A stretch of 55,989 nucleotides of DNA, filler included, from Platydemus manokwari (Eukaryota), in NCBI GenBank assembly GCA_037951405.1. It is 6 parts of 6 records of this genome, joined end to end, with 100 filler letters (N's around TTAATTAATTAA, not from the genome) between each part and the next. Parts side by side here need not be neighbours in the genome. Positions count along the whole stretch, not along the records: positions 19,043 to 28,500 come from JBBMOY011247208.1; 5 more parts are not named here. One strand, given 5' to 3'. The notes under the pieces are model-generated. The model was given only the letters and a program-made list of their open reading frames with translations. It was not told where the DNA came from and made no database searches. How positions within the stretch are numbered: the stretch's first letter is position 1; the number at the start of each line of letters is the position of its first letter. A program made the position numbers and the translations under genes. Shown here piece by piece: positions 19,043 to 28,500 of the stretch.

Positions 19043-19299
19043 AATTTTGTTTTGTTTGTGTTTTGTTTTTTTTGTTTAGCGAAAAAACCGGAAAGGAATT
19101 ACCGACACACCTGGTATATTGAATAAAACAATGAAATACATTTGAAAATACAGTCGGAATTGTTTTTTTTTCATTTATTTATTCTTCGTCTACTATTTTT
19201 AAATATATTGATAATTTTTGCTTCCACCAAAAAATAGCTATTGTTTTTGTTCATGACTGAAATTGTAAGTTGGTTTATAATGGTTCACTTAATTAAAAG

Positions 19300-20320
19300 A
19301 TTATCTAAATTGATCGCATTCACTTTTAACTTTAATAGGTGCGAATCTTTAAAGAACTAAAAAAACTTTTTAAACTTCAAAATCGGAATTGTGAAGTCAG
19401 GATAATATAAGCTAAATATAAATGAATAGCAATAAGTTATAAGCTGTAATAAGTTTCATTAGATAATGTTCTAATTAGCAATAACATTTTAAATATCTTG
19501 AAAATTTGGATAATTTGTTGTTTATATTCATGATGATTATATCCAATTTTATCAATTCGAATAAAATCAGAAAATACGTTTTATCTTTATTTGTTAATGT
19601 ACAGCTTCAATTTGTATGTTTTTAATTGAATGAAAATCTTTGATGGTAAAAAACAAGTGTATAGTTTGTTGCGGATGTAATAATGTGGAAAATAAGAGAA
19701 CGAATCAGTAATTAGATAATGTACTTATGTTAATGGATATTTAAATTGGTTAAATAAATCGTATTTGAGTATTTCTCAATTAAATAGCTACAGAAATTTG
19801 AAAGTTAAGCATTTATAAGGTCCTTTTCAGTATTAAGATGATCAATATTTAGATCAAGTGGTAAGATTAAACTCTAGAAAAGCTACAAAGCATGAAATTT
19901 CTGTATCAGATTCTGAAAATATTAAATATCTAAATGTAATTGAGAAGATAGACACTTTATCTAAGAAAATTGTCAAATCTTTAATTATTTCTGCTGGAAT
20001 CCATTTTTTATTGTAAATATAGGAGTCAGTGTTAGACCACTACAAATATCCTTATTTAAAATTGGAGTTGGAGTCAAGTAAGTTTTTAACACCTTCAAAC
20101 TCCTGATGTATTGACCTATCCTACTGACATAAATCTATAATTTTATTTGTAATTTTGGGAATCAAAACATTGGATAGAAATTGAGCACACTCCGCATTTA
20201 CGAGCCATCGTCTGTAAATGTCACGACAGAGTATATTTCCAGTAGAAGCTAGAGGAAAACTGTGGTTTGTTGGTATTGACACTATGAAGGTGCCGATTAG
20301 CACTTGTAATTTAGTTAATA
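19300..20320 (-). mobile_element. Possible hAT transposase relic
   Basis: FP..STGNI, TFTDDGS*M, IQCF and C-terminal LAYIILT...KSFFSSLKI occur in hAT order (HTG.NI, VTDNA.NM, CxxH, ER.FS dimerisation domain). Confidence 0.38.
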
Positions 20321-20629
20321 AATATTTGTATCAAACTTAATTTCATTTCCCAACACATCAAGTTATTAAAATAATCTTACAATTAGAGTTTTATCAAAAA
20401 CATTTTCATAGTTTTATACTAGCATTAAACATAATTATCAAAATAAAATAATAATTTAAACATGAATTATAAATAACAATATGGGTTTTATATCAAATCA
20501 AATTAAAATGGAACAATTGGTTTAATAATAATTCAATCTCATAAGATAAATGCTTTCTAACTTTATATGCATTGTTACTACCTGTTATGTAAAAATTCAT
20601 TCACCGAAATTTTAAAATTAGCTATAAAA

Positions 20630-21650
20630 TCTTTTTTATTGAGGTTTTTGAATTAATATGGTTTCTGATTACATCGTTAGCAGTTTCAAAAACTAGCCCA
20701 ACACAGATTCGTTCAACTTGTGCGCTATAAACCATTAAGAAAATGGATTGATCAAAACAATTTATTGCATCCATTACAAAAAAGCCTTGGCCCAACAGCC
20801 GGATGAATTGAACAAAACCTAACTCTAAAAATGATTCAAGAGTGATATCGTGATAAAAAGTAAACAAATCTCCGCATTGGCTTTCTTGACATTAAAGAAG
20901 CTTTTATTTTCTTAAGTATCGATGCTATGTTAGCAGTCCTAAAAAGAATGTGTGTGTCTAAAAAAGCCACTACAATAATTAACGCTATATACGCAAACTT
21001 TAGTACTTCCTTATATAGCAAATGCATCGCAAATCTGATAAACATAAAAAGAGACGTACAGCAAAGATGCCCAAATTAATTCCTTTTATTTAATATTGCA
21101 ATTAATCTACTAATAATTAAAATGGACTTTTGTCCGAGTAAATTATTAGTACAAGAAAATCACAAAATCTCATGTCTAGCAAATGCCGATGACATTGTAA
21201 TAGTTGATTAGAATGGAAATGGATTTCAATAACAAATAGACAGTGCATGCTTGCTCAGGAAACAAATAGGATTCAAGTTCAAGCCATCTAAATGCGCTCA
21301 CCTATTAAATAAAGGCTTAAACAAAAGACATGCTAAAGACTTTACTATGTACGGAATGACTAAATCAGAACTATCAATAAAATGCAATTATTGATATTTT
21401 GGAGTTAACTTTTCGCTGAAACATTACAGCTCAATAGAGAGTATTTGTACCACCGAGTCGATCTAAACGGAAAAATTAGAGAAAAGTATTATTTTATTTT
21501 GGTAGAAATTAGATACGTGTAATGTCTTTATTCATAGCAAGACTACATTCTTTGTCAAGAACTACTATGTATCATTTAGAAAAAATGAATCAATCATCTA
21601 TAAGTTTTATTTTATAAGGCCATACAGATGCCTTTCAAACGTTAAGAATG
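20630..21650 (+). mobile_element. Non-LTR retrotransposon RT relic (R2/NeSL/Utopia-like)
   Basis: KWIDQNNLLHPLQK, GFLDIKEAF, IKRDVQQRCP..LLFNIAI, ISCLANADDIV and IGFKFKPSKCA occur in RT domain order, interrupted by stops. Confidence 0.8.
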
Positions 21651-22630
21651 TTATTGTTAATCATTCAAGATATTTCATCAATCCAAGAAAACGAAAAATT
21701 CAAAAGTATAGTAGCGAAAAATAATTAATTCACATTATTCTGATTTAAAATTAAATTTTTAATAAAATACTTTCACTTGAAATATACGAAAAATAGCTAA
21801 GACCTCATTTCTTAACTTAAGCCATTATTTGTAACGAATCATTTGATTGAGAGTGAAAGAATGAAAAACTTATCTGTAACAAAGTTCGGCCTCATTTGAA
21901 AATATTCCAGTGATCGTAATATAAGTACAAATGCATGGTAATAATGGTGAAAAAATCAATTTCCTCTATTTGGCGTTTATGAAAAAAATGTTTTAAAACA
22001 GATTAAATTCGTTCCTGGGCTTTCACGTCTAATTTACAAGAAATGTGACTAAATTGATTAGAATAACAAAGGTTATCTTTAACTTATCGGAAATTAGCTT
22101 TCATTAATAATTTGAGCGGTCTCTCAACAAAATGAAGACAAATCATACATAATTATAATTAAACCATTGAAAAGGTTTCTTAATGCTTTCTATTCATGAG
22201 TTTCGGAAAGGATATCAAATCCACCACTGCATGATTTTTTTCTTACAGTTTTTTCAAATCAATCTGGTCAGCAATTTAAGACTAGTCTCGAAATCGAAAA
22301 ATATACCATCTGCGATTGCTCGCGTCTACAGAAAATGACTCAATTTGCGGACAATATGATATCATCAATGTACAATCCAAAAATCAACAAAACCTGTACG
22401 ATAGTACTTCTATTAATGTGTTACTAGCTTATCAAGATGCACCAATTATGAAACCACCATATAAATCCATTTGTCTAAATATATTGAATTTGCTTCACAA
22501 TAATAATGTCGTTGTCTTAATTATGTTGTTGTTATTGGTTGTGTTTCAGCAACTATATTTACTCTTCTTTTGTTGAACCAGCAACATTTCATATTGAATT
22601 GAAATTAAGCGAAATTCAGAATAATCCTAA

Positions 22631-25600
22631 ATGATTGCTCTGGAAGATGTAAACTACTTTATGATGATTTTATTTTTTATTATTTATTAATAAAATTCTA
22701 GAAAGGGGTTGAGAAACCGTCTGAGAAACATAAAAAGAATAAGAAGAAAGGAGAGAAGGACGAAAATCATCTGAAAAAAGAAATAGAGACTGACGATCAC
22801 ATAATTAGTTTAGAAGAACTATATATCAAACTGCAAACAGATCCAGATTCAGGTTTAACTCCGGATGAAGTGGAGTTGGCTTTATTGTTTCTTATTAATT
22901 GGTTTAAAATTTTACACAGAATTCGATTAGCACGAGATGGTATAAATGCGTTGACTCAAGTTAAAGGTACTCCAGAAATAGTGAAATTCATTAAAACCCT
23001 TGTGGGAGGTTTTTCTATTCTGCTATGGGTAGGTTCGATACTCTGCTTTATTGCTTATGGAATTCAAGCCGGAACTACTATAGATGCTCCAAAAGATAAT
23101 GTAATTGATTACTTCATATAGAAACAGTCATTAATGTTAAATAAAGTTGTATTTGGGAGTCGTTTTGGCATTCGTTGTCATATTTACTGGTTGCTTTTGT
23201 TACTATCAAGATTCAAAATCTTCTCAAATTATGAAATCATTCGGTAAAATGGTTCCTCAAGTATGTATTTATTAATTTCATTAAAATCACCCAATTTAAT
23301 CCTATTCTTTATGGCTGTTGTTAGTCTTGTCTTTTTAGAAAGCAATTGCTTGTCGTGGAGGAGTTTTACAAGAGGTCACTACCGAATCTTTGGTGAAAGG
23401 GGATATTGTGGAAATAAAGTTTGGTGATCGAGTACCTGCAGATGTACGAATGATAAAATCTAGTGGATTCAAAGTAGATGCATTACGTGTTTTATAAAAT
23501 GAAATAATGTCGAGAAAAGGTTGATAATTCAGCATTGACCGGTGAATCAGAACCACAAGCAAGAAATACGGAATGTTCTAGCAACAACATATTGGAAACA
23601 TCAAACATTGCCTTTTTCTCAACTAATGCCGTGGAAGGTAGAAAATATTTTGAATATCTTTAATGTTTTATTGAATATCTTCCATTCAGGTACATGCAGA
23701 GCCATTGTGATAAATACCGGGGATCATACCGTGATGGGTCGCATTGCTAATCTCACCAGCACCTTAACAATGGGAAAAACACCGATTGGCAAAGAAATTG
23801 AACACTTCATTCATATAATCAGCGCAATTGGTGTATCTCTTGGAATAATATTTTTTATAATTGCCTTTGCTATGGGATCGAAATGGTTAGAAGCGGTTTT
23901 ATTTCTGATTGGTGTAATTGTTGCAAATGTTCCTGAAGGCATGCTGGCAACTGTTACTGTGAGTCATAACTTGATGTTATCATCTATAAAATATTTTTCA
24001 AATCTTAATAGTACAAAACTATTTTTGAAACAAAAACTGTTGACGTGATATAATAAATATTATAAATTATAATATTCATCATATTCGATTAATATAATAG
24101 CATATCATTATAATTTAAAGGTTATGTTGACCTTAACTGCTAAGAAAATGGCAAGAAAAAATTGCTTGGTCAAAAACTTAGAAGCCGTTGAAACTCTTGG
24201 ATCCACCAGCATTATATGTTCGGACAAAACTGGAACACTAACTCAAAACGTAATGACTGTAGCTCACACTTGGTACGATAATAAAATCAATGACTGTCCG
24301 ACTTCAGAAAACCAAATGGGTTAGTAACAAAAATATCGAATTCATTAAAATCCCTACTTCACTGAAGGTTTGACCAACAAACAAAACAATGCAACTTGGG
24401 ATGTCTTAGTGCGAGTGGCTGTGTTGTGCAATCGAGCACAGTTCAAAGCAGGAGAAGAAGAAAAAGTTATATGGAAAAGAGAATGCACTGGTGATGCATC
24501 TGAGTCAGCTTTATTGAAATATGGTGAACTGTCCAAAGGTGGAATAACGAAGTATCGTGAAGAAAATCATAAAATAATCGAAATTCCATTTAATTCAACA
24601 AACAAATATCAAGTATATTTTCCCATAAAAAAAAATTGTTCTCATAGTTCTGTAGGTTTCAATACATGAAACCAATGATGGTGATCCTCGATATTTGCTA
24701 GTGATGAAAGGTGCTCCAGAGAGAATTCTGGAACGATGCTCTGTTATTCTAATAGATGGTCAAGAAATCGAAATTGATGATCACTGGATAAATGAATTTA
24801 ATCATGCATACATTGAGATGGGTGGAATGGGAGAACGGGTCCTAGGGTTCTGTGATTATCGGCTAGATGAAAAGGAATTTCCAAGGTTTATACATTGATA
24901 ATTCTCGAAAAATATTGCTATATATATACATATATTAATTGCATTATCTTCAGGGGTTACCCTTTCAATGCAGAAGAAATTAACTTTCCAATAAAAGGCT
25001 TTCGATTTGTTGGATTAATTTCAATGATAGATCCTCCTCGACCAACAGTACCGGATGCTGTTGCAAAATGTCGTTGCGCTGGAATAAAAGTCATTATGGT
25101 AACAGGAGACCATCCAATTACTGCTAAAGCGATATCGAGATCAGTAGGGATAATAAGTATGGATAATAAGACGGTGGAAGATATCGCTCTTGAAAGAGGA
25201 GTTTTACCAGCAGATGTTAGATTTTTTAAAAATTTTCAATACATGTATACTCCTAACAGATAAATCCGAGAGAAGCTAAAGCCTGTGTGATTCATGGATC
25301 AGATTTAAAGGAACTAACTCCTGACCAATTAGATGAAATTTTAAAATATCACGATGAAATTGTATTTGCAAGAACAAGTCCGCAGCAAAAATTACAAATT
25401 GTTGAGGGATGTCAAAGACAAGGAGCTATAGTTGCTGTAACTGGAGACGGTGTCAATGACAGTCCTGCATTGAAAAAAGCTGATATCGGTAGGTATTTAT
25501 ATTTTCTTTTCTTGAATATTCCAAAATCGTTGGGAGAATTATTGATTAAAAATAAATACTGTTTTTCAAGCAATCTGGAGAAGTAAATTATTTTGTAGTT

Positions 25601-27491
25601 TCTGATTTCAGGAATTGCAATGGGAATTGCGGGAAGTGATGTTAGTAAACAAGCTGCTGATATGATCTTACTGGATGATAACTTTGCATCAATTGTTATT
25701 GGGATTGAACAAGGACGAAAAATATTTGATAATTTGAAGAAATCGATAATTTACATTCTTGTAAAAACAATTCCCGAAATTGTCCCATTTCTTGCCTATA
25801 CGTTGGTGAATATACCCTTAGCTCTTGGTACCATTACAATTCTCTGTATTGATTTGGGAACTGATATGGTAATTTGATTTTTAATGATTTAGTTTCACGA
25901 GACTCAATGGCATATTATATGTAACTTCAAAAACAAAATTTAAAATACCTTTTATTTGTGTTTAGTATTTTTATTTGAATAATTTACTTTTATCGTATTT
26001 TCAGTTATTATTTTTGTTTCCATTTTCGAAAGTAGCTTTTAAATATTAATAAATTATGCGGCAATTTTAAATTTGACTACTTTCATTATAATTAATTTTC
26101 GCTCATCAGATAATTTTATATATAATTGCTATGTTTGATTTATTCGTATAATTCAGTTAAAATCTCATTTTTGAAGATGTCTAATAGTGACAAAACATAG
26201 TTTTAAATCAAAGTTCCCATCCTAATCACAACACTACTATAAGATTATTTGAGTTTTTAAATTTGGATTTTTTAATTATAAATTGATTTTGTCGACTCCA
26301 GACATGTTTGATAATGCCATTGCTTATTTTATAAAATAATTGCAAAAATTGAGAATATCTCTCAATTTGCTTCTAATGTTAAAAAGGGGTCCTCGCTAAT
26401 TTTCAATAAATTGCAATTCGGCCTACTTTTCCATTGTTTCAAATAATCAAATTTTATGAGATTTTGAAGTTAATTAATTATTGATTTCAAACAACTAAAA
26501 TTGTTATTAAGTATTTTAATAAAAAATTCAAAATGTTTTTAAAGAATATAATTAAATAAACTATATCTAATTTTGCAATACACTCACCAAATTAAAAATT
26601 TTATTTTAGGACCTTTTTTAACTTTATTGTTATAATTTGAAATATCAAGTCGTTTCTCATTTCCAATTGTATTCTCTTATCACCAACGCATAAATACACA
26701 AATACGATGAATTTATGTAGATTTTATTTCCAAGAAATATATTTAATTTCCCAGAAATTTATTTAGATGCCAGCAATAGCGCTAGCTTACGAGGGAGCCG
26801 AATCAAATATAATGAGGCGAAAACCTAGAAACCCTGTTAAAGATAATCTGGTAACTACGAAACTTATCTCCTTGACACATGGTCAACTAGGCATAATACA
26901 AGCTACTGGCTCATTTTTTGCATATTTCGTTATCATGGCTGAAGAAGGTTTCTTGCCACTTCGATTAATCGGCATACGTTCGGATTGGGACAGTACAGGA
27001 ATAAATGATCTCAAAGATTCTTATGGACAAGAATGGGTAAGCAAAATATAATATTTACAAATATAATATATAACTTATAGACCTATAAACAAAGAAAGAC
27101 GTTAGAAACCACTTGTTACAGTGCATACTTTGTCTCGGTAATGATACAACAGTGGTTTAACATAATGCTCGTCAAAACTCGAAGAAACTCACTCTTTCAA
27201 CAAGGAATGTGGAATCACCAACTTACTTTCTCCATGTTTTTCGAAACAGGATTGGCGATTTTTATAATCTATTGTCCAGGAGTAAATGAAGTATTAAAGT
27301 TGTCACCTCTAAGGTAAAATTAAGGAAGTCATAAAGTATCGTAAAAATTGATTATCACAATTGTTTGTAGATTCTCGTGGTGGTTTATAGCGATTCCTTT
27401 TGGATTTTATCTTTTGATCTTTGATGAAATGCGTAAAATTATTTTACGTCGAAACAAGAAATCAATTTGGTTGGCTAGAGAAAATCCATAA
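22631..27491 (+). CDS. P2C-type (Na,K/H,K family) ATPase alpha subunit, 16 exons, ~1017 aa, atypical ion-binding sites
   Basis: Hand-spliced on GT-AG introns. Exons: 22631-22648, 22702-22874, 22920-23100, 23147-23260, 23339-23473, 23520-23637, 23690-23958, 24121-24319, 24368-24612, 24656-24885, 24954-25215, 25260-25488, 25612-25868, 26767-27036, 27081-27313, 27371-27491. Total 3054 nt, in frame, ending in TAA. Motifs: [73 protein letters not shown]. Exon 1 (18 nt) is the least certain. Confidence 0.97.
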
Positions 27492-27749
27492 TTGTGACTG
27501 TCATTATAAACGTTTAATAATCTGATGTTATAATTTTTAGACTATCATAATAATTACATTTGTTTTGTTTATTTAATTCTTTATTTTCTTAGTTTTTTAT
27601 TTATTATTTTCATTATTATTAGCAAGTTACATATTTAAAAAAGTAAGATGACAAAACAAGGCAACATCATGTCATAACTTTATTAATAAAAAATTCTGAA
27701 TATTTAAACAAATATCTCTAATATTATCTTACTTCCCTCTCACATTCTT

Positions 27750-28110
27750 TTTAACGTTTTTCTCAACTTCTCGTTTCGACAGTATTGAATTGTTAAATCC
27801 TTCTTTATTGATGATTACTGCTGATTTTATGCCTAACAAATTTAATAAAGCTGGGATGTGGCCTGCCTATCTTAGCCCATTGGTGTTACGTTAATCTTGT
27901 GAGTACATTTCATTCCCTTGATCATTCTCCTTACGATATTGGAAATCAAAATTAAATCCTGAAAATTTTTCAAACCATAAGGAGAACAAATCGGATTTTT
28001 GGTTTTCTCGAGTATATCGATGCTTTGTGATCAACGGCAGTTGCAAACTTTTACCAAGTAAATAATGCTTAAAATTGATGAGTTTAAGGGTCAATGGTTA
28101 TTTTATTTTA
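27750..28110 (-). mobile_element. Ty3/gypsy pol relic (RNase H C-terminus into integrase)
   Basis: FKHYLLGK...LWFEKFSGFNFDFQYRKENDQGN matches FRHYL.G..F / RW...L..F.F.I.YR.G..N. Confidence 0.7.
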
Positions 28111-28500
28111 TAAGGATTTTAACTCGTTTTATCAATATCCGAAACTAATAAGTTCTCTGAGTCCTTATGGCCCACAAGTAATCACTAAACCTCGACTGAC
28201 TCTAATCCATGTATGAAGACGATAAAGTGATGAGGAGATTTTGATGATGATAAAATTTACAGAAATGATTGTGAAACCTAATGTCACTTATCGATTCAAT
28301 ATTACAACAACCTTGTGTTTTATTATATGTTTATTACTATAACAGTAAATACAATTATACACCTAATAAAAATAATTCAAATACTAATATGCACTTAATA
28401 AAAATTAGATTTTAGAACTACATTTTGGATCTTCCAGCAAATGCCGGGCATAACAGGAACAATTGATCTTCTGCACCAGACGATCTTCTTGAGTGCGTCG

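Follow-up and report, generated by a model that had tools for sequence, protein, structure and literature searches.

The question raised by this locus is what a sodium-pump-like ATPase transports once the parts of the protein that build ion sites I and III have been replaced. The gene, a P2C ATPase alpha-subunit paralog, lies on the + strand at positions 22631 to 27491 of a window (the whole stretch of DNA analyzed, 55,989 nucleotides [nt] with filler, six parts joined end to end) from the Platydemus manokwari assembly GCA_037951405.1, within the part that comes from JBBMOY011247208.1 (positions 19,043 to 28,500). Its product has intact ATP-hydrolysis machinery, intact site II ligands (M4 backbone region, Glu327, Glu779, Asp804, and Asp808), and an intact putative beta-binding loop; what builds sites I and III, i.e., the faces of M5 and M8 and the C-terminal tail, has been exchanged for a conserved set of other residues. 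The explanation that we favor, and hold to be probable from the sequences of this gene and its relatives, is a selectively maintained P2C alpha subunit of a subfamily here called KT/FN, which would have been duplicated from a canonical invertebrate Na,K-ATPase and would perform reduced-stoichiometry or electroneutral exchange.

The features that bear most directly on this reading are listed below. Residue numbering is that of pig alpha1, with chain 3wgu_A mapping the residues of the encoded protein to Y771, S775, N776, E779, D804, D808, Q923, and D926.

22631 to 27491, + strand: P2C ATPase alpha-subunit paralog, whole gene, start to stop codon, with GT-AG introns and an open frame.
23926 to 23940, + strand: M4 motif NVPEG, with canonical Asn324 and Glu327 equivalents.
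24223 to 24237, + strand: DKTGT phosphorylation motif, intact in the translation.
25752 to 25778, + strand: M5 motif YILVKTIPE (canonical YTLTSNIPE), with T772I, T774V, S775K, and N776T; Tyr771, Pro778, and Glu779 are kept.
25764 to 25766, + strand: AAA codon of Lys775.
25767 to 25769, + strand: ACA codon of Thr776.
25848 to 25865, + strand: M6 motif IDLGTD, the same as in solved Na,K-ATPases (CIDLGTDM).
27019 to 27036, + strand: SYGQEW of the M7-M8 ectodomain loop (canonical SYGQQW), kept in all members of the clade described below.
27150 to 27161, + strand: M8 motif QWFN, with Gln923 and Trp924 kept, A925F and D926N, and V922Q and C930V nearby.
27468 to 27491, + strand: C terminus WLARENP followed by the stop codon, one residue shorter than the canonical W-x-E-x-ETYY and with no terminal tyrosines.

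In alignments, the M5 stretch of the solved Na,K-ATPases reads KSIAYTLTSNIPEITPFL, from which the encoded protein departs by S775K, N776T, T772I, and T774V, and the M8 stretch reads VVVQWADLIICKTRRNS (canonical VQWAD), from which it departs by A925F and D926N. Further differences from canonical Na,K-ATPase are A770I, V922Q, and C930V. The solved tail consists of RRNPGGWVEKE plus three residues and canonical relatives end in ETYY, whereas the shorter tail of this protein has no Tyr-Tyr. Canonical Ser775/Asn776, Asp926, and C-terminal ETYY are thus all absent from it, and Lys775 or Thr776 was found in none of 181 canonical M5-M6 fragments. Shared with canonical Na,K-ATPase are the catalytic motifs, the M4 and M6 carboxylates, and the SYGQ loop, together with Asn324, Glu327, Tyr771, Pro778, Glu779, Asp804, Asp808, Gln923, Trp924, and the RRNS site; we take the SYGQ loop in the M7-M8 ectodomain to be the beta-subunit-binding region. 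An earlier reading of this DNA (the original prediction) had held that the M4 NVPEG and M6 IDLGTD carboxylates are canonical and that M5, M8, and the C terminus have changed jointly. Alignment to solved structures bears out the first claim, and the second is upheld both by the alignments and by the conserved combination in related genes.

The altered positions have known roles in other pumps. Burnay et al. in 2003 reportedly found that a positive charge at Na,K-ATPase Ser775 abolished electrogenicity, and Vedovato and Gadsby in 2010 are said to have found that occluded states are stabilized by the pair of tyrosines at the C terminus. In the H,K-ATPases, Lys at the 775 equivalent physically blocks site I, leaving site II to bind a single K+ (PMC10756188). 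The M5 Lys is critical for the electroneutrality of the non-gastric pump, its replacement by Ser restoring a second K+, and ATP12A is a 1H+:1K+ electroneutral pump (PMC9463140). Na+ at site III is coordinated by Gln923 and Asp926 (PMC9463140), and the D923N change of ATP1A3 lowers Na+ affinity (PMC6384024). The latter, known from human rapid-onset dystonia-parkinsonism/alternating hemiplegia, is the same M8 site III Asp-to-Asn substitution as in the present protein; in ATP1A3 it stands alone in a canonical pump and is pathogenic, whereas Asn926 here is fixed, conserved, and within a co-adapted set. An ordinary 3Na:2K sodium pump in which the substitutions are simply tolerated would be in keeping with the presence of the catalytic core and of Tyr771, Glu327, Glu779, Asp804, Asp808, and Gln923, but we consider it very improbable in view of the absence of Lys775 and Thr776 from all of the canonical fragments, the lowering of Na+ affinity by D926N on its own in ATP1A3, and the filling of site I by a positive charge at 775 in H,K-ATPases. 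In the light of the published mutants and structures a normal 3Na:2K cycle is unlikely, and the encoded pump is likely to be something other than a 3Na:2K pump.

That the gene is intact is seen from a 16-exon model rebuilt by hand on the + strand, with an ATG at 22631 and a TAA stop at 27489 to 27491, a coding sequence of 3054 nt (1017 amino acids [aa]), and GT..AG borders at every intron. Open-frame segments from all three frames of this strand align as P-type ATPase pieces throughout 22631 to 27491, and the joined frame has no break. Its exons are as follows.

22631 to 22648, + strand: exon 1, the putative first coding exon (MIALED, 6 codons), with an ATG, a GTAAAC donor, and a frame open into exon 2.
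22702 to 22874, 22920 to 23100, 23147 to 23260, 23339 to 23473, and 23520 to 23637, + strand: exons 2 to 6.
23690 to 23958, 24121 to 24319, 24368 to 24612, 24656 to 24885, 24954 to 25215, and 25260 to 25488, + strand: exons 7 to 12.
25612 to 25868, 26767 to 27036, 27081 to 27313, and 27371 to 27491, + strand: exons 13 to 16.

The least certain part of this model is exon 1, for which the basis is the ATG, the GT donor, and the open frame alone. The P-type catalytic motifs are all present in the translation, and 10 exons have as their best match the NCBIfam profile TIGR01106 (Na,H/K antiporter P-type ATPase alpha subunit), collinearly over profile positions 46 to 957, with about 1149 bits against a cutoff of 946, a total that is a rough sum over separate exon matches and not one joined-protein score. 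The protein is 65% identical to the full-length canonical pump P0256 over 979 residues, with one gap. GC content is 37% in the exons versus 22% in the introns, the piece as a whole being AT rich (24 to 36% GC). The gene limits originally proposed coincide exactly with the rebuilt ATG and TAA, and the claim of an intact frame with intact catalytic motifs stands on the GT-AG model and its translation. Contigs of the same species from a public run match the stretch with zero letter differences over 22400 to 25661, 25641 to 26115, and 26597 to 27700 (about 13x, every exon covered), and sequencing error was rejected on these grounds. As this run may be the source of the assembly, the match excludes an assembly slip and is not fully independent support.

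Whether the altered residues are a peculiarity of one copy or a property of a gene lineage was answered by related sequences. A fragment-level search with exon 13 returned P0151, which is 95% identical and has the same YILVKTIPE, along with P0165 (M5, YNFIKTIPE) and P0168 (YNFVKTIPE), and a search with exon 14 returned P0259 (86%) and P0262. The relative contigs came from ENA assembly ERZ27256860 (L001 and L012) and Logan run SRR33002330 (L008, L010, and L011). The Lys-Thr pair at 775/776 is present in L001, L008, and L012. L008, which covers exons 13 to 16, reads YNFIKTIPE in M5, IDIGTD in M6, and QQWFN in M8 and ends in SWFSREAA; L010 (exons 14 to 16) has QQWFN and a C-terminal end identical to that encoded in the window; and L011 has QQWFN and ends in KDIWLVREHV. 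QQWFN is therefore found in four of four clade members (the pump gene, L008, L010, and L011), and all of their tails are without tyrosine. The three contigs also share the lengths of exons 14 to 16 (270, 233, and 121 nt), with GT-AG borders and intact frames. In other searches, the exon 13 query against protein representatives retrieved mostly fragments, with the M5 variant in none of the best 150; the homologous-protein search with exon 15 gave no candidate; and exact look-up of the exon 13 open reading frame (ORF) gave no record.

The C-terminal 207 residues were used for a maximum-likelihood tree with few named taxa and without an H,K-ATPase row (the vertebrate ATP4A-like P0136 and P0142 were excluded from all trees). 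In it, the pump gene, L010, L008, and L011 form one clade (support, 100/99), which splits into type A (the pump gene and L010; 99/98) and type B (L008 and L011; 90/91). The clade's stem branch measures 0.48, compared to 0.13 for its canonical sister P0256. Changes that every clade member carries and that canonical sequences lack or show at below 5% cluster in M5 (A770I, T772I/N, T774V/I, S775K, and N776T) and M8 (V922Q, A925F, D926N, and C930V); further clade-fixed changes outside M5 and M8 are E757Q, D823N, A846T, and Y847H. Exon 13 of L001 has 95% protein identity to that of the pump gene with a proportion of synonymous differences (pS) of 0.80 and a nonsynonymous divergence (dN) of 0.045, and its M5 nonapeptide is unchanged despite six synonymous differences in nine codons. 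Over exons 14 to 16, the comparisons that include L010, L008, and L011 give a pS of 0.74 to 0.86 (saturated) and a dN of 0.09 to 0.27. The original prediction had reckoned with the substitutions being missing from raw reads and orthologs; the same-species contigs are identical and the relatives carry the changes, and in the dN/dS-type comparison synonymous sites are saturated while dN remains at 0.05 to 0.27.

A decaying or non-pumping copy (one under relaxed selection, or one serving only as a scaffold or receptor) or an assembly artefact might account for the long stem branch of the clade, and there was no RNA run among the public runs matching the stretch (the one matching run, of unknown type, was available as contigs). 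Such an origin is nevertheless extremely improbable given 16 open exons with correct splice sites, zero differences in reads-based contigs, and, over at least three lineages, saturated synonymous sites and a dN of 0.05 to 0.27 with the changed residues invariant. A pseudogene was rejected on the intact 16-exon model and on relatives with intact frames and low dN. Judged by these comparisons, the substitutions are neither errors nor decay, and several related genes retain the combination under strong purifying selection. Because the conserved changes are shared in the clade, the three regions appear to have changed once, early, and then to have been held together; on this reading they are kept jointly across one or more series of duplication or speciation. 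The three contigs from SRR33002330 may be paralogs within one genome or may come from three species in one sample. The locus very probably encodes a functional divergent P2C alpha subunit.

The original prediction had called the pump an independently evolved H,K-like ATPase. Its relation to the two kinds of pump was assessed by comparison with chains of solved structures, exon by exon.

Exon 7: Na,K-ATPase, 105 to 109 bits; ATP12A, 92 to 94; ATP4A, 80 to 84.
Exon 13: Na,K-ATPase, 131 bits; ATP12A, 109 to 113; ATP4A, 112.
Exon 14: Na,K-ATPase, 120 to 123 bits; ATP12A, 94; ATP4A, 85.
Exon 15: Na,K-ATPase, 84 bits; ATP12A, 39 to 46; ATP4A, 45.
Exon 16: Na,K-ATPase, 27 to 34 bits; ATP12A, 19 to 20; ATP4A, 20 to 23.

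Na,K-ATPase chains outscored ATP12A and ATP4A in all five exons so compared, the canonical Na,K-ATPase alpha subunit (ATP1A; 3wgu, 2zxe, and 8d3u) being the best match in every one. An ortholog of vertebrate ATP4A or ATP12A was rejected on these scores, and because the Na,K-ATPase score was higher in each exon, Lys775 would be convergent and not inherited from the H,K-ATPases. ATP12A (7x20 to 7x24) shares with the encoded protein a Lys at the Ser775 equivalent and an Asp at the 804 equivalent but has Ala778, Ile924, and Arg930 equivalents where this protein has Pro, Trp, and Val, and it keeps Asn795 and Asp945 where this protein has Thr and Asn. The Ile at the 924 equivalent and the Arg at the 930 equivalent are among the residues that discriminate non-gastric H,K-ATPase from Na,K-ATPase (PMC9463140). 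Gastric ATP4A (5ylu and 6jxh) also has the Lys (YTLTKNIPE), with a similarity to the pump gene that is the lowest in exons 7 and 14 and level with that of ATP12A in exons 13, 15, and 16; it differs in M6 (IELCTD, here IDLGTD) and M8 (QIAD...IRKTRR, here QWFN...VKTRR). The H,K-ATPases retain both the Gln and the Asp of site III, whereas the present clade is without that Asp. A scan of metagenomes for the Lys775 M5 pattern found four contigs only (L003 to L006), all vertebrate ATP4A-like; these are vertebrate gastric H,K-ATPase fragments in metagenome assemblies, probably host DNA and possibly human.

Artemia alpha2KK (8k1l) is likewise a natural invertebrate Na-pump paralog with Lys in the M5 ion-site region, and its 2Na:1K stoichiometry is proven. 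Its lysines stand at Asn324 and Asn776; the present protein, in contrast, keeps Asn324, has Thr at 776 and Lys at 775, and carries additional changes at site III (D926N) and at the C-terminal tyrosines. A reduced-stoichiometry, Na+-dependent, electrogenic Na pump of the alpha2KK kind (e.g., 2Na:1K) would suit a sequence in which all exons tested resemble Na,K-ATPase and in which Asn324, Trp924, Pro778, and Asp804 are of Na,K type, all the more as alpha2KK proves an M5 Lys to be compatible with Na+ transport. We nonetheless regard it as improbable, since the Lys is at the H,K position 775 and not at 776, Asn324 is not Lys, and site III is also hit (D926N, A925F, and no tyrosines), so that it is difficult to see where a second Na+ would be bound.

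Other noncanonical P2C pumps were met in the course of the searches. Two contigs, L002 (ENA GROS21-1 METAG scaffold_78635) and L009 (Logan SRR32665178), encode M5 as YTLTHTIPE (His775 and Thr776) in intron-poor genes; their identity to the protein encoded in the window is 63 to 76% and 62 to 81%, respectively, and both end before M8 and the C terminus. The bdelloid rotifer Didymodactylos carnosus (P0081/P0258; CAF1043580.1) has YTLSSKIPE (N776K) in M5, VQWTV in M8 (Asp926 to Val), and a tail without Tyr-Tyr, seemingly a further case, independently arisen, in which an M5 Lys goes with the loss of site III features. Among 258 fragments from environmental or assembly data, about 13 have an alpha2KK-like M5 with Lys776 (P0032, P0070, P0139, P0202, P0243, P0246, P0026, P0034, P0163, P0248, P0045, P0211, and P0145), in the forms YTLTSKIPE, YTMTSKVPE, YTLSSKVPE, YTMTSKIPE, and YILASKMPE, and the Artemia-type substitution may therefore be far more widespread than brine shrimp. 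P0149 (Logan, 635 aa) is a divergent P2C-like sequence with AQWAN in M8 (Asp926 to Asn), a tail ending in RRTLY, and a long tree branch.

How would the rebuilt pump work? Under the reduced-stoichiometry reading, it would depend on a beta subunit, in line with the conserved SYGQEW loop; the amino group of Lys775 would act as a tethered cation that fills site I, the arrangement known from the H,K-ATPases; and site III would be unable to hold Na+. With site I filled by Lys and site III disabled, each cycle would export about one cation (Na+ or H+) via site II for one K+ imported, making transport electroneutral or of reduced stoichiometry. Related genes of other organisms retain this rebuild too, and fewer ions are therefore probably moved per cycle than by a normal pump. 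For electroneutral 1:1 exchange in particular we would put the chance at a little under even, and H+ as the exported ion is unlikely.

Several points weigh against this account. The relatives are short contigs, none of which alone spans M4 to the C terminus. Of the four residues by which non-gastric H,K-ATPase is told apart from Na,K-ATPase, a single one (Lys775) is of the H,K kind, the others being Pro at 778, Trp at 924, and Val at 930. The claim of an independently evolved H,K-like ATPase is supported in part: its independence fits a protein that is Na,K-ATPase-like and not an ATP4A/ATP12A ortholog, and the function proposed is plausible. In Artemia alpha2KK, where the M5 Lys comes one residue further on, transport remains Na+-dependent, electrogenic, and 2Na:1K (PMC10756188). 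Finally, N776T weakens a site II ligand, and K+ binding could be altered.

This last substitution also bears on a K+-independent Na+- or H+-ATPase without countertransport, in which the M5 Lys would be a built-in counterion that triggers dephosphorylation. N776T takes away a K+ ligand common to sites I and II, and in several further families of P-type pumps a positive M5 residue has been proposed to act in this way (PMC10654040), but having this Lys does not free the H,K-ATPases from binding and requiring K+ at site II, and the site II carboxylates are all kept here, which makes such a pump quite improbable. Returning to reduced-stoichiometry exchange, one far-reaching form of it would be that an invertebrate lineage independently derived from a Na,K-ATPase a clade of pumps exchanging protons for K+ electroneutrally (or working at 1Na:1K), which arrived by convergence at the H,K-ATPase solution of a Lys in site I, went beyond the vertebrate pumps in losing the site III Asp and the tyrosines as well, and was then duplicated; we put this forward tentatively, as a rather doubtful proposition.

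The surroundings of the gene hold little else. Fourteen of its introns measure 43 to 162 nt and one, intron 13, 898 nt.

25869 to 26766, + strand: intron 13, 898 nt, containing a very high-copy repeat at about 26100 to 26650.

The excess length of this intron is due to the repeat inside it, an interspersed element with a word depth of about 1.8 to 2.1 x 10^5 against 13 in the flanking single-copy exons (summed contigs). It has many variant copies and joints and is without clear terminal repeats or an Rfam match. Within the piece, there was no Rfam match and no beta-subunit gene, and Pfam gave nothing convincing in the 3.6 kb upstream (19043 to 22600) or the 1 kb downstream (27500 to 28500), just short AT-rich ORFs.

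What is known of ion selectivity and stoichiometry in P2C pumps comes mostly from mutagenesis and from two examples in nature, the H,K-ATPases of vertebrates and the alpha2KK of Artemia. The KT/FN subfamily would be a third natural experiment, combining an H,K-type Lys, a natural equivalent of D923N, and tyrosine loss in a Na,K-type background; a literature search found no pump subfamily described with this combination, which is weak evidence for novelty. Invertebrates are not generally known to have ATP4A/ATP12A orthologs. "H,K-ATPase" pharmacology is in wide use for planarians and sea urchins, and planarian genes are named H,K-ATPase or atp12a in the literature, with RNA interference phenotypes. 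If their hosts are flatworms, the KT/FN genes would be candidates at the molecular level for the "H,K-ATPase" activity, sensitive to SCH28080, that is used in studies of regeneration bioelectricity, and a convergent clade of such pumps, if the host is relevant, would provide a concrete gene for planarian and sea urchin "H,K-ATPase" work.

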